The notes under the pieces were generated by a model that worked only from the letters and a program-made list of their open reading frames with translations, was not told the DNA's origin and ran no database searches. A program made the position numbers and the translations under genes. Shown in pieces: positions 24,672 to 25,676 of a stretch of DNA of 64,000 bases (position 1 is the stretch's first letter; each line of letters starts with the position of its first letter). The DNA lies in IMG/VR virus record IMGVR_UViG_3300041416_000287, positions 176,449 through 240,448 of that record, one strand, 5' to 3'.

Positions 24672-24696
24672 TCTAAAGAGATAGGAGTTATCCTAT
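24672..24696 (+). promoter_or_regulatory. Putative tRNA promoter box TCTAAAGAGATAG-N7-CCTAT (copy 1)
   Basis: Same box and spacing occur immediately upstream of tRNA-Trp and tRNA-Phe. Confidence 0.65.
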
Positions 24697-24736
24697 GAGT
24701 GATAGAACACTTGAACATCCGAACAATTAGATTGTT

Positions 24737-24807
24737 CGGGTGGTAGTTTAATGGTAGAACACCGGGCTGTAGTCCCGAAGATGCAGGTTCGATTCCTGAA
24801 CATCCGA
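24737..24807 (+). tRNA. trnY: tRNA-Tyr(GTA), intronless, with mismatches (possibly atypical or degenerate)
   Basis: CGGGTGG TA GTTT AATGGTA GAAC A CCGGG CTGTAGT CCCGA AGAT GCAGG TTCGATT CCTGA ACATCCG A; anticodon 24769-24771; C1:G72 and A73 fit eukaryotic/archaeal Tyr identity. Confidence 0.75.
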
Positions 24808-24808
24808 A

Positions 24809-24836
24809 AAGTTAGATCTCAATTGAGATCTAACTT
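24809..24836. terminator. Perfect 28-bp palindrome after tRNA-Tyr
   Basis: AAGTTAGATCTCAATTGAGATCTAACTT. Confidence 0.8.
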
Positions 24837-24892
24837 CGATTTTTCAATTAGCTGACGCTTGGCCGAAATGAAATCTCATTACGATAAAGTGG

Positions 24893-24917
24893 TCTAAAGA
24901 GATAGACAGTAACCTAT
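24893..24917 (+). promoter_or_regulatory. Putative tRNA promoter box (copy 2)
   Basis: TCTAAAGAGATAG-acagtaa-CCTAT abutting tRNA-Trp nucleotide 1. Confidence 0.7.
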
Positions 24918-24988
24918 GAGGTGATAGTTTAGTGGGAAAACAGCAGGCTCCAGACCTGCGGTCGGGGGTCCGATTCCCCCTCACCTCA
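24918..24988 (+). tRNA. trnW: tRNA-Trp(CCA)
   Basis: GAGGTGA TA GTTT AGTGGGA AAAC A GCAGG CTCCAGA CCTGC GGTC GGGGG TCCGATT CCCCC TCACCTC A; all stems pair; anticodon 24950-24952. Confidence 0.9.
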
Positions 24989-25035
24989 TCGTGATATATG
25001 TGATAATATATATCGCAAAAAAAGCGGATCACTAA

Positions 25036-25545
25036 ATGGCCATTACCCTTACACGTTCAGACCAATTTCTCGATTATTTCGGTCGAGGCACCGTAACAGC
25101 AATCGCGATCGACCCGGCACTACAGCGGTTAGCTGGCCAAGGAAATGTCATCATGACGGCCCAAATTGGGGAAGGAAGAATGGGGAGAACTATTTATGGT
25201 GAGGTTCAATACAACCAGGCAACCAATCAGGTCAGCCTTCCACTGCGGGCTAATGTCAGCATGTACGTCTGCGTGGAGATCTATTACAAACATGGAGAAT
25301 ATCAAACCACGGTAATTTCATCGGATGAGGACATGCGGATATATTGTATCGATCAACTTCGGGGCTATGGTGATATCCCACAGATGGATGTGCAAACGTA
25401 TGAAGTGGCCGTCGCTCAATATCAAGCGATGCCATTGGATGATCTCATTCGTTTGGTTCTTAGTCATGGACGTCAGGAAATCGAGAGTCAATCCGGTTGG
25501 GGATTAGTTGATGTAGTGAAAGGCCAGAACTTAGTGGAGTATTAA
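25036..25545 (+). CDS. Hypothetical protein between tRNA genes
   Basis: 169-aa ORF with TAAATG start. Confidence 0.7.
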   Translation: MAITLTRSDQFLDYFGRGTVTAIAIDPALQRLAGQGNVIMTAQIGEGRMGRTIYGEVQYNQATNQVSLPLRANVSMYVCVEIYYKHGEYQTTVISSDEDMRIYCIDQLRGYGDIPQMDVQTYEVAVAQYQAMPLDDLIRLVLSHGRQEIESQSGWGLVDVVKGQNLVEY

Positions 25546-25553
25546 TATAATGA

Positions 25554-25578
25554 TCTAAAGAGATGGAGAGGATCTTAT
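25554..25578 (+). promoter_or_regulatory. Putative tRNA promoter box (copy 3)
   Basis: TCTAAAGAGATGG-agaggat-CTTAT abutting tRNA-Phe nucleotide 1. Confidence 0.7.
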
Positions 25579-25649
25579 GGACCCGTAGTTTAGGGGGAGA
25601 ACACCAGACTGAAACTCTGGCGACCCAGGTTCAAATCCTGGCGGGTCCA
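25579..25649 (+). tRNA. trnF: tRNA-Phe(GAA)
   Basis: GGACCCG TA GTTT AGGGGGA GAAC A CCAGA CTGAAAC TCTGG CGAC CCAGG TTCAAAT CCTGG CGGGTCC A; anticodon 25611-25613. Confidence 0.9.
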
Positions 25650-25652
25650 ATT

Positions 25653-25676
25653 GATACGTGTGGAAACACACGTATC
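25653..25676. terminator. Hairpin after tRNA-Phe, shared with the convergent gene
   Basis: GATACGTGTG-gaaa-CACACGTATC. Confidence 0.75.

Follow-up and report, generated by a model that had tools for sequence, protein, structure and literature searches.

A 25-nucleotide box at RNA genes and hairpins overlapping tRNA 5' ends suggest virus-directed tRNA expression in a member of the Nucleocytoviricota

How does a giant virus express tRNA genes of its own? The expression and maturation of giant-virus tRNAs in cytoplasmic factories, away from nuclear RNA polymerase III (Pol III) as well as RNase P, are largely unknown, the main earlier evidence being that the tRNAs of Mimivirus are polyadenylated. 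The question is raised here by three tRNA genes (tRNA-Tyr, tRNA-Trp and tRNA-Phe), lying between positions 24672 and 25676 of a 64,000-nucleotide (nt) stretch of DNA from IMG/VR record IMGVR_UViG_3300041416_000287. This stretch, here called the window, comprises bases 176449-240448 of a viral contig of 240,448 bp, to which CheckV assigns a completeness of 46%. An initial annotation of the window proposed that each of these genes is a self-contained unit, transcribed by the viral RNA polymerase from a dedicated upstream box and ending at a hairpin.

Judged by its genes, the contig is a 240-kb piece of a Nucleocytoviricota genome, with a G+C content of 46%. Proteins encoded in the window include a family-B DNA polymerase, which clusters with Nucleocytoviricota groups, together with DUF5757, DUF5857, PI3K-FYVE and eIF5/eIF2-beta-like proteins. 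The nearest IMG/VR record has a DNA polymerase of 68% identity. Near-identical DNA was found in several peat metagenomes (DNA runs); the contigs from four of these runs have the same sequence as the window, and hence give no information on polymorphism.

The pattern TCTAAAGAGATRG-N7-CYTAT matches the window exactly three times, always on the plus strand, at 24672-24696, 24893-24917 and 25554-25578. It is absent from 100 dinucleotide-preserving shuffles, even when two mismatches are allowed. The ends of the tRNAs are given as placed by Infernal, those from ARAGORN differing by 1 nt; both programs detect all three. Box 2 abuts nucleotide 1 of tRNA-Trp (anticodon CCA, 24918-24988) and box 3 abuts nucleotide 1 of tRNA-Phe (GAA, 25579-25649). 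Both tRNAs begin with G, and in each case the box starts 25 nt before the tRNA and its last T is position -1. Box 1 (TCTAAAGAGATAG-GAGTTAT-CCTAT, with G as the next base) is separated by a 40-nt leader (24697-24736) from tRNA-Tyr (GTA, 24737-24807), which begins with C (C1-G72). CCA is not encoded in any of the three. Each tRNA is followed by a hairpin that begins 2-4 nt after it and has perfect 14-nt arms behind tRNA-Tyr (24809-24836), 11 bp including G.U pairs and a 4-nt loop behind tRNA-Trp (approximately 24991-25016), and perfect 10-nt arms with a GAAA loop behind tRNA-Phe (25653-25676), where it is shared with a convergent open reading frame (ORF) at 25680-25994. The initial annotation had described the three boxes, their spacing, the Tyr leader and the nearby hairpins correctly. 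It was equally right about TCTAAAGA, said to lie about 25 bp before the start at 52523: this core is found on the minus strand at 52549-52542, 26 nt before the ATG of ORF 51636-52523, and is of the protein-gene type, a core without the full box.

Conservation of the box was examined in metagenomic contigs from one small clade, representing three to four viruses. A Logan contig of 1.5 kb (L009) encodes a homologue, 72% identical, of the eIF5-like protein whose gene adjoins the tRNA cluster. There the order is eIF5-like gene, box, leader, tRNA-Tyr, hairpin, box, tRNA-Trp, hairpin, and a third box within about 40 nt of tRNA-Trp, where the contig ends. The three boxes are 68-80% identical to those of the window, and the spacing at tRNA-Tyr and tRNA-Trp is equal, with 25 nt to nucleotide 1 of tRNA-Trp. 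In the pairwise alignment, the spacers upstream of the boxes cannot be aligned, those of the window containing a 15-nt tandem repeat and a further 47 nt, and conservation sets in about 3 nt before TCTAAA. It extends to the second half of the tRNA-Tyr leader, and the differences between the tRNAs themselves are compensatory changes in stems.

A weight matrix built from the boxes gave only four strong matches in the whole 240-kb contig: the three tRNA boxes, and a fourth at C1:99356 on the minus strand (C1 denoting the contig). The fourth lies at a second tRNA locus 100 kb from the window boxes, 5 nt past the stop codon of a DUF2828 gene. All four stand in sense orientation before RNA genes, and no protein gene has a full box. 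A box is also present at the place matching the second locus in a relative (L080), whose upstream DUF2828 gene is 72% identical. When all eight boxes are aligned, TCTAAA, A10, T11, A19 and A24 do not vary. Seven of the boxes have T at position 25 and a purine after it, the L080 copy having A-A. The length of 25 nt and the boundary between T-1 and the purine at +1 are constant, whether a tRNA or further leader comes next. A small hairpin within the box (GAT...ATC) was considered and dropped, as its register varies among the copies and its covariation is inconsistent.

These comparisons support the view that the box is a conserved external element linked to RNA genes, and not the result of recent duplication, because the L009 boxes are at the same tRNAs with the same spacing, show scattered substitutions and an abrupt onset of conservation, and because there are further copies at the second locus and in L080. 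Recent local duplication, which would have undermined the initial proposal, is therefore not what the relatives point to. Database scans gave little else. The exact box matches IMG/VR once, by chance, inside a coding region without a tRNA. Relaxed scans gave 15 loci in IMG/VR and 43 in JGI metagenomes; none of these is beside a tRNA and all look like chance. Scanning IMG/VR with a tRNA-Tyr 22-mer, or with searches anchored on the eIF5-like protein and on ORF169 (a window protein discussed below), gave no match, and a tRNA-Trp pattern gave 114 loci, mostly in phages, none of them with the box.

A tRNA-Leu pattern matched tRNAs of unrelated giant viruses in IMG/VR. One of these, the giant-virus bin IMGVR_UViG_GVMAG-M-3300014204-73, has four repeated tRNA-Leu units (2711-7283, minus strand), each with the Mimiviridae early motif AAAATTGA about 51 nt before nucleotide 1 and without a leader hairpin. 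It is another way of setting a viral promoter before a tRNA.

The first six positions of the box are used more widely. In intergenic DNA, TCTAAA is about 7 times as dense as in coding DNA, and within 60 nt upstream of ORFs it is found 18 times in sense and twice in antisense orientation. ORFs also show an enrichment, at -40 to -60, of AATTGA, the early-motif core of the Mimiviridae. Both features recall CroV and ChlorV, for which the early motif AAAAATTGA and the late motif TCTA are reported (PMC5294985, PMC13196603), since in the present virus TCTA(AA) is enriched in one orientation over the 50 nt or so before ORFs, and AATTGA stands at the distance just given. The present virus differs in extending the hexamer by 19 conserved positions, at RNA genes only; no RNA-gene-specific extension of TCTA is described in the CroV and ChlorV literature examined (PMC5294985, PMC13196603). 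At protein genes, an A/T patch is found at -12 to -9 and the sequence downstream of the hexamer is not conserved, whereas the tRNA boxes have 19 conserved positions downstream, which are not A/T-rich, and no consistent A/T patch upstream. Because the two kinds of site conserve opposite sides of TCTAAA, the full box is, on the alignments, a distinct class specific to RNA genes and built on a shared hexamer. The initial annotation called the box dedicated: this holds for the 25-nt form, found only at RNA genes, but not for its hexamer core, which is common to protein-gene promoters.

In one class of genes, including that for the largest subunit of RNA polymerase (RPB1), TCTAAA is merely 0-2 nt before the ATG (for example at G000:C1:48636 on the minus strand, and at 75368, 83813 and 147192 on the plus strand). 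The late initiator of poxviruses, TAAATG, is similar, and the arrangement hints at 5' leaders that are very short or generated by slippage. A further candidate for a box, TCTAAAGAG at 56614, was rejected: it is the end of two convergent genes beside a terminator hairpin.

What, then, ends these transcripts? Perfect hairpins of at least 8 bp were sought from -10 to +70 of the stop codon, and were found at the 3' ends of 104 of 228 ORFs, as against 3 of 228 in the middle of coding sequences and 4 of 228 in shuffled sequence. If G.U pairs are allowed, 135 of the 228 have a hairpin of at least 9 bp, typically with a stem of 10-11 bp and a loop of 3-4 nt. This supports placing the hairpins behind the three window tRNAs, from their form, in one class with those found at the ends of about half of the viral ORFs. 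In Mimivirus, the RNase III-like protein R343 nicks inside such hairpins, after which the transcript is polyadenylated (the "hairpin rule": PMC4402537; Priet et al. 2015), and viral transcription of its tRNAs was inferred from their polyadenylation (PMC4810235, citing Byrne et al. 2009). The present virus resembles the Mimiviridae in that palindromic hairpins end many genes and the same hairpins stand behind tRNA genes, with transcription ascribed to the viral polymerase and RNase III-like nicking of hairpins being a Mimivirus feature. It differs in its G+C content of 46%, in that no RNase III/PAP gene cluster turned up in the half of the genome that is available, and in having hairpins that also precede tRNAs and cover their first 6 nt in a fixed 6+6 geometry, which is not part of the published rule. 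The initial proposal that transcripts end at the hairpins is thus strengthened by the match to ORF-end hairpins.

The second locus is organized differently. Behind its single box is a non-coding array of 1.7 kb (L011:1141-2857, minus strand, equivalent to G000:C1:97639-99356 and outside the window), which contains no ORF. Its 13 units all fold with a closing stem that is acceptor-like. Six are tRNAs of class II size (two tRNA-Ser, an 88-nt tRNA with anticodon CCT, and three tRNA-Leu), and these are the only Rfam matches; the remaining 7 of the 13 are structured RNAs with no ARAGORN or Rfam match. At both loci Rfam detects tRNAs only, and ARAGORN with introns and relaxed thresholds adds nothing except spurious calls. 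Every unit has before it a linker rich in A and a hairpin, the stem of which is about 12 bp and the loop 3-4 nt, and two more hairpins close the array. By its layout, the locus looks like a polycistronic unit with six tRNAs behind one box. The initial annotation had suggested looking for the box at all tRNA loci. A diverged copy does head this locus, but there is one for the array and not one for each tRNA, and the exact pattern is absent here at up to 2 mismatches. The description of tRNA genes as self-contained units accordingly fits the window, where each tRNA has a box and a hairpin, and not the array, where six tRNAs share one. It may be added that unit 10 of the array resembles a degenerate tRNA-Leu with large insertions.

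Hairpins of the same size are found before tRNAs elsewhere. The second half of the tRNA-Tyr leader, unnoticed in the initial annotation, forms a hairpin at 24716-24742 with a 12-bp stem and a 3-nt loop, the 3' arm of which consists of 6 leader nt and nucleotides 1-6 of the tRNA. L009 retains it, with a compensatory change from A-U to C-G. The same design is found before the array tRNAs and before the tRNA-Leu of L080 and of a further relative (L083). Among 10 bona fide tRNAs from four viruses, the 3' arm consists of 5-6 leader nt and 5-6 tRNA nt in eight, the exceptions being Leu-GAG (6+1, with an internal mismatch) and Leu-CAG (3+6, with a long loop). On average, 5.7 of 6 positions of a 5' arm pair with the tRNA to which it belongs, and 3.9 of 6 with other tRNAs. 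Each position has 2-4 types of pair, and G.U pairs are frequent, which suggests that the hairpin acts in RNA. In the predicted lowest-energy fold of the tRNA-Tyr precursor, both for the window virus and for L009, the leader hairpin beats the acceptor stem. If so, the precursor would be a poor substrate for RNase P until the leader has been cut.

Taken together, these features suggest that the virus itself carries out the synthesis and trimming of its tRNAs, independently of the usual tRNA machinery of the host. The explanation that we favour is a viral promoter module for non-coding RNA genes combined with hairpin-directed formation of ends; in its complete form, which includes a start at +1, we give it an even chance. 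Positions 1-6 of the box would be the hexamer that is also used, oriented, upstream of protein genes as a CroV-like TCTA motif; positions 7-20 would be an RNA-gene-specific extension, in which A10, T11 and A19 are invariant; and positions 21-25 would be YYTAT or TAAT, always followed by a purine. The reader of the box would be the virus-encoded multisubunit RNA polymerase, and not host Pol III. At tRNA-Trp and tRNA-Phe, transcription would, most simply, begin at G+1 or within 2 nt of it, in which case no 5' processing would be needed. Units that cannot occupy the start site (tRNA-Tyr, the internal units of the array, and the tRNA-Leu of two relatives) would carry the 12-bp leader hairpin instead. 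The identity of tRNA-Tyr requires C1 in eukaryotes and archaea; tRNA-Tyr would thus be kept from a start site that has to be a purine. A hairpin-specific viral nuclease would nick the leader hairpin 6 nt after the loop and so create the 5' end, the candidate being an RNase III-like protein, possibly with trimming by an exonuclease of the XRN family, for which the contig has a gene (5'-3' exonuclease). The 3' hairpins would be the general 3'-end signals of the virus, according to the hairpin rule. The trailer would then be trimmed and CCA added, an addition that is needed because none is encoded.

That the box is a viral promoter, with the start at either place discussed below, we consider probable. 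It could instead be an upstream modulator of Pol III, or have no role in transcription, if these genes are transcribed by host Pol III with the help of their internal A and B boxes. Such boxes are indeed near consensus in all three tRNAs, but they are inherent to tRNA sequence and do not discriminate, and although the window has a T5 run behind the tRNA-Tyr hairpin, it has no T4 run behind tRNA-Trp or tRNA-Phe, and L009 has none behind tRNA-Tyr or tRNA-Trp. In addition, the virus has the core of the box as an oriented motif of its own upstream of genes, the hairpins are viral 3'-end signals, the virus itself encodes a polymerase (the RPB1 gene is at C1:45177-48629), and Mimivirus provides a precedent for viral transcription of tRNAs (PMC4810235). 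Transcription by Pol III is therefore very unlikely. The initial annotation, which had preferred the viral polymerase, gains from the core motif, the RPB1 gene and the general lack of T-runs, and this polymerase is the putative enzyme. We find it scarcely credible that the box is a non-functional relic, either of local duplication or of a mobile element carrying a tRNA cassette. Two genes nearby, ORF169 and a GIY-YIG gene, are likely to be mobile, and the leader behind box 1 begins with GAGTGATAG, which is similar to the 5' end of tRNA-Trp. Nevertheless, the three tRNAs differ in identity, the middle of the box varies while its flanks are fixed, the box is kept in two further viruses with spacers that cannot be aligned, and there is a copy 100 kb away.

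The position of the start is a closer question. In the other geometry, which is possible but which we think somewhat unlikely, transcription starts in or just after an initiator-like TCTAAA, as at protein genes, and positions 7-25 are a conserved leader of about 20 nt, peculiar to RNA genes, which RNase P or a nuclease of the virus would remove exactly at CYTAT|G. CroV has its TCTA motif near start codons (PMC5294985), and here protein-gene sites hold their extra information upstream of TCTAAA, as the A/T patch. Moreover, TCTAAA is 6-27 nt before authentic ATGs in protein genes: 6-8 nt at RPB1 and others, and 18-20 nt at XRN and the kinase, the ATGs of the last two being authentic because Pfam matches begin at residues 1-3. 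The start at protein genes must thus coincide with the motif or be close to it, no more than about 18 nt away and not 25, which speaks against a start at +1. Several other observations also weigh against the explanation that we favour. L083, a relative of 75% identity, has the leader hairpin and no box. The tRNA-Leu of L080 and unit U1 of the array start with G and nevertheless have leader hairpins, so that C1 is not the sole reason for a leader. The 228 ORFs behind our statistics were called crudely by ourselves. There is no match in the fragment to RNase III (profiles PF14622 and PF00636), Rpb2, PRORP, a CCA-adding enzyme, TBP or VLTF3, which at 46% completeness is uninformative; PRORP gave no match in any control genome either. 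On the other side, a start within the box does not explain why the 25-nt length and the boundary between T-1 and the purine are fixed whatever follows, as a cut there would be pointless for tRNA-Tyr or the array. In L009 the preceding hairpin is only 7-12 nt from TCTAAA and nothing consistent is conserved upstream, so that nearly all of the promoter information would have to be downstream of the start. A second 5'-processing activity would also be required, beyond the handling of leader hairpins. We regard a start at +1 of tRNA-Trp and tRNA-Phe as evenly balanced, and their near-leaderless nature, proposed at the outset, is likewise something that we infer from the box.

How does this compare with other tRNA systems? 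In Nanoarchaeum equitans, box A is 26 nt before leaderless tRNAs that start with a purine, and tRNA-Tyr, with C1, is a special case (PMC3491384). The likeness is considerable: TTTAAA there and TCTAAA here, at a fixed 25-26 nt before nucleotide 1, with tRNAs that begin with a purine and tRNA-Tyr as the exception. The spacing of 25 nt is exact at window tRNA-Trp, window tRNA-Phe and L009 tRNA-Trp, and in this the virus matches the fixed distance of N. equitans. Leaderless starts would not extend to all of its tRNAs, given the 40-nt leader of tRNA-Tyr and the hairpin leaders of the six array tRNAs and of the tRNA-Leu in L080 and L083. The systems also differ in that many tRNAs here are inside an array and not at a promoter, and in that the case of tRNA-Tyr is solved there by a G-1 extension, and here by a 40-nt leader with a hairpin.

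The second locus resembles the polycistronic tRNA clusters of chloroviruses, as it looks like one multi-tRNA transcription unit that has to be cut apart; RNase III has been proposed to process the chlorovirus clusters (PMC4810235). Chloroviruses are however without an RNA polymerase of their own, and that paper (PMC4810235) describes neither a gene-specific promoter box nor a hairpin over the tRNA 5' end. The present virus also has a likeness to yeast, in having hairpins between non-coding units and in encoding an exonuclease of the XRN family. In yeast, Rnt1p (an RNase III, on which see PMC4402537) and Xrn1/Rat1 process polycistronic snoRNAs, hairpins between the units directing their endonucleolytic separation. 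The yeast process is nuclear and specific to snoRNAs, and uses long AGNN-capped stems, in contrast to the 12-bp stems with a mature 5' end found here.

It is already known that giant-virus tRNAs are transcribed by the virus, and the hairpin rule and TCTA motif are not new either. In the literature searched, there is no description of a 25-nt box that is confined to RNA genes and ends at tRNA nucleotide 1, nor of a hairpin of fixed 6+6 geometry that encloses the 5' end of the mature tRNA. The locus offers two testable sequence rules: the RNA-gene box that ends at tRNA nucleotide 1, and the 6+6 leader hairpin, which covaries and has the mature 5' end within it. If these hold, they would define a promoter class for viral non-coding RNAs and a means of finding unannotated ones (compare the 7 of 13 array units), and would add to Nanoarchaeum a second natural case in which tRNA 5' ends are formed without RNase P. 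More tentatively, we propose a biogenesis that is independent of RNase P and has two routes, though we doubt that it will hold in full. Leaderless G-starting tRNAs that abut the box would be made directly by the viral polymerase, and all other tRNAs and tRNA-like RNAs would acquire a mature 5'-phosphate end from a single nick, made exactly between -1 and +1 and 6 nt 3' of the loop in the 12-bp leader hairpin by the hairpin-specific RNase III-like enzyme of the virus that also forms 3' ends. The 3' end of a unit and the 5' end of its successor would then both be the work of one enzyme acting on one signal.

Between tRNA-Trp and box 3 lies ORF169 (25036-25545, plus strand), a protein without known identity, which is probably a mobile insert and outside the tRNA system. 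It is absent behind tRNA-Trp in L009, and its homologue in another contig (L008, 6950-7520) has at its flanks a stretch of about 38 nt duplicated from a GIY-YIG gene's end; from this context it looks like a mobile cassette.

Some smaller features of the region deserve mention. Although U55 is nearly universal in the T-loops of tRNAs, the T-loop of tRNA-Trp is TCCGATT, with C55, both in the window and in L009. The 15-nt tandem repeat, CAGCTTGCAGTTTAC, is present in about 4 copies at 24603-24663, between the eIF5-like gene and box 1, and is not found in L009. The eIF5-like gene itself (24125-24559, minus strand) adjoins the tRNA cluster and encodes an eIF5/eIF2-beta N-terminal-domain protein, the closest non-viral kin of which is eukaryotic eIF5, at about 45% identity. 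Further cargo in the window includes a PI3/PI4-kinase with a FYVE finger (6520-9108, minus strand), a collagen-repeat protein (26104-27327, minus strand) and a GMC oxidoreductase (38074-39621, plus strand).

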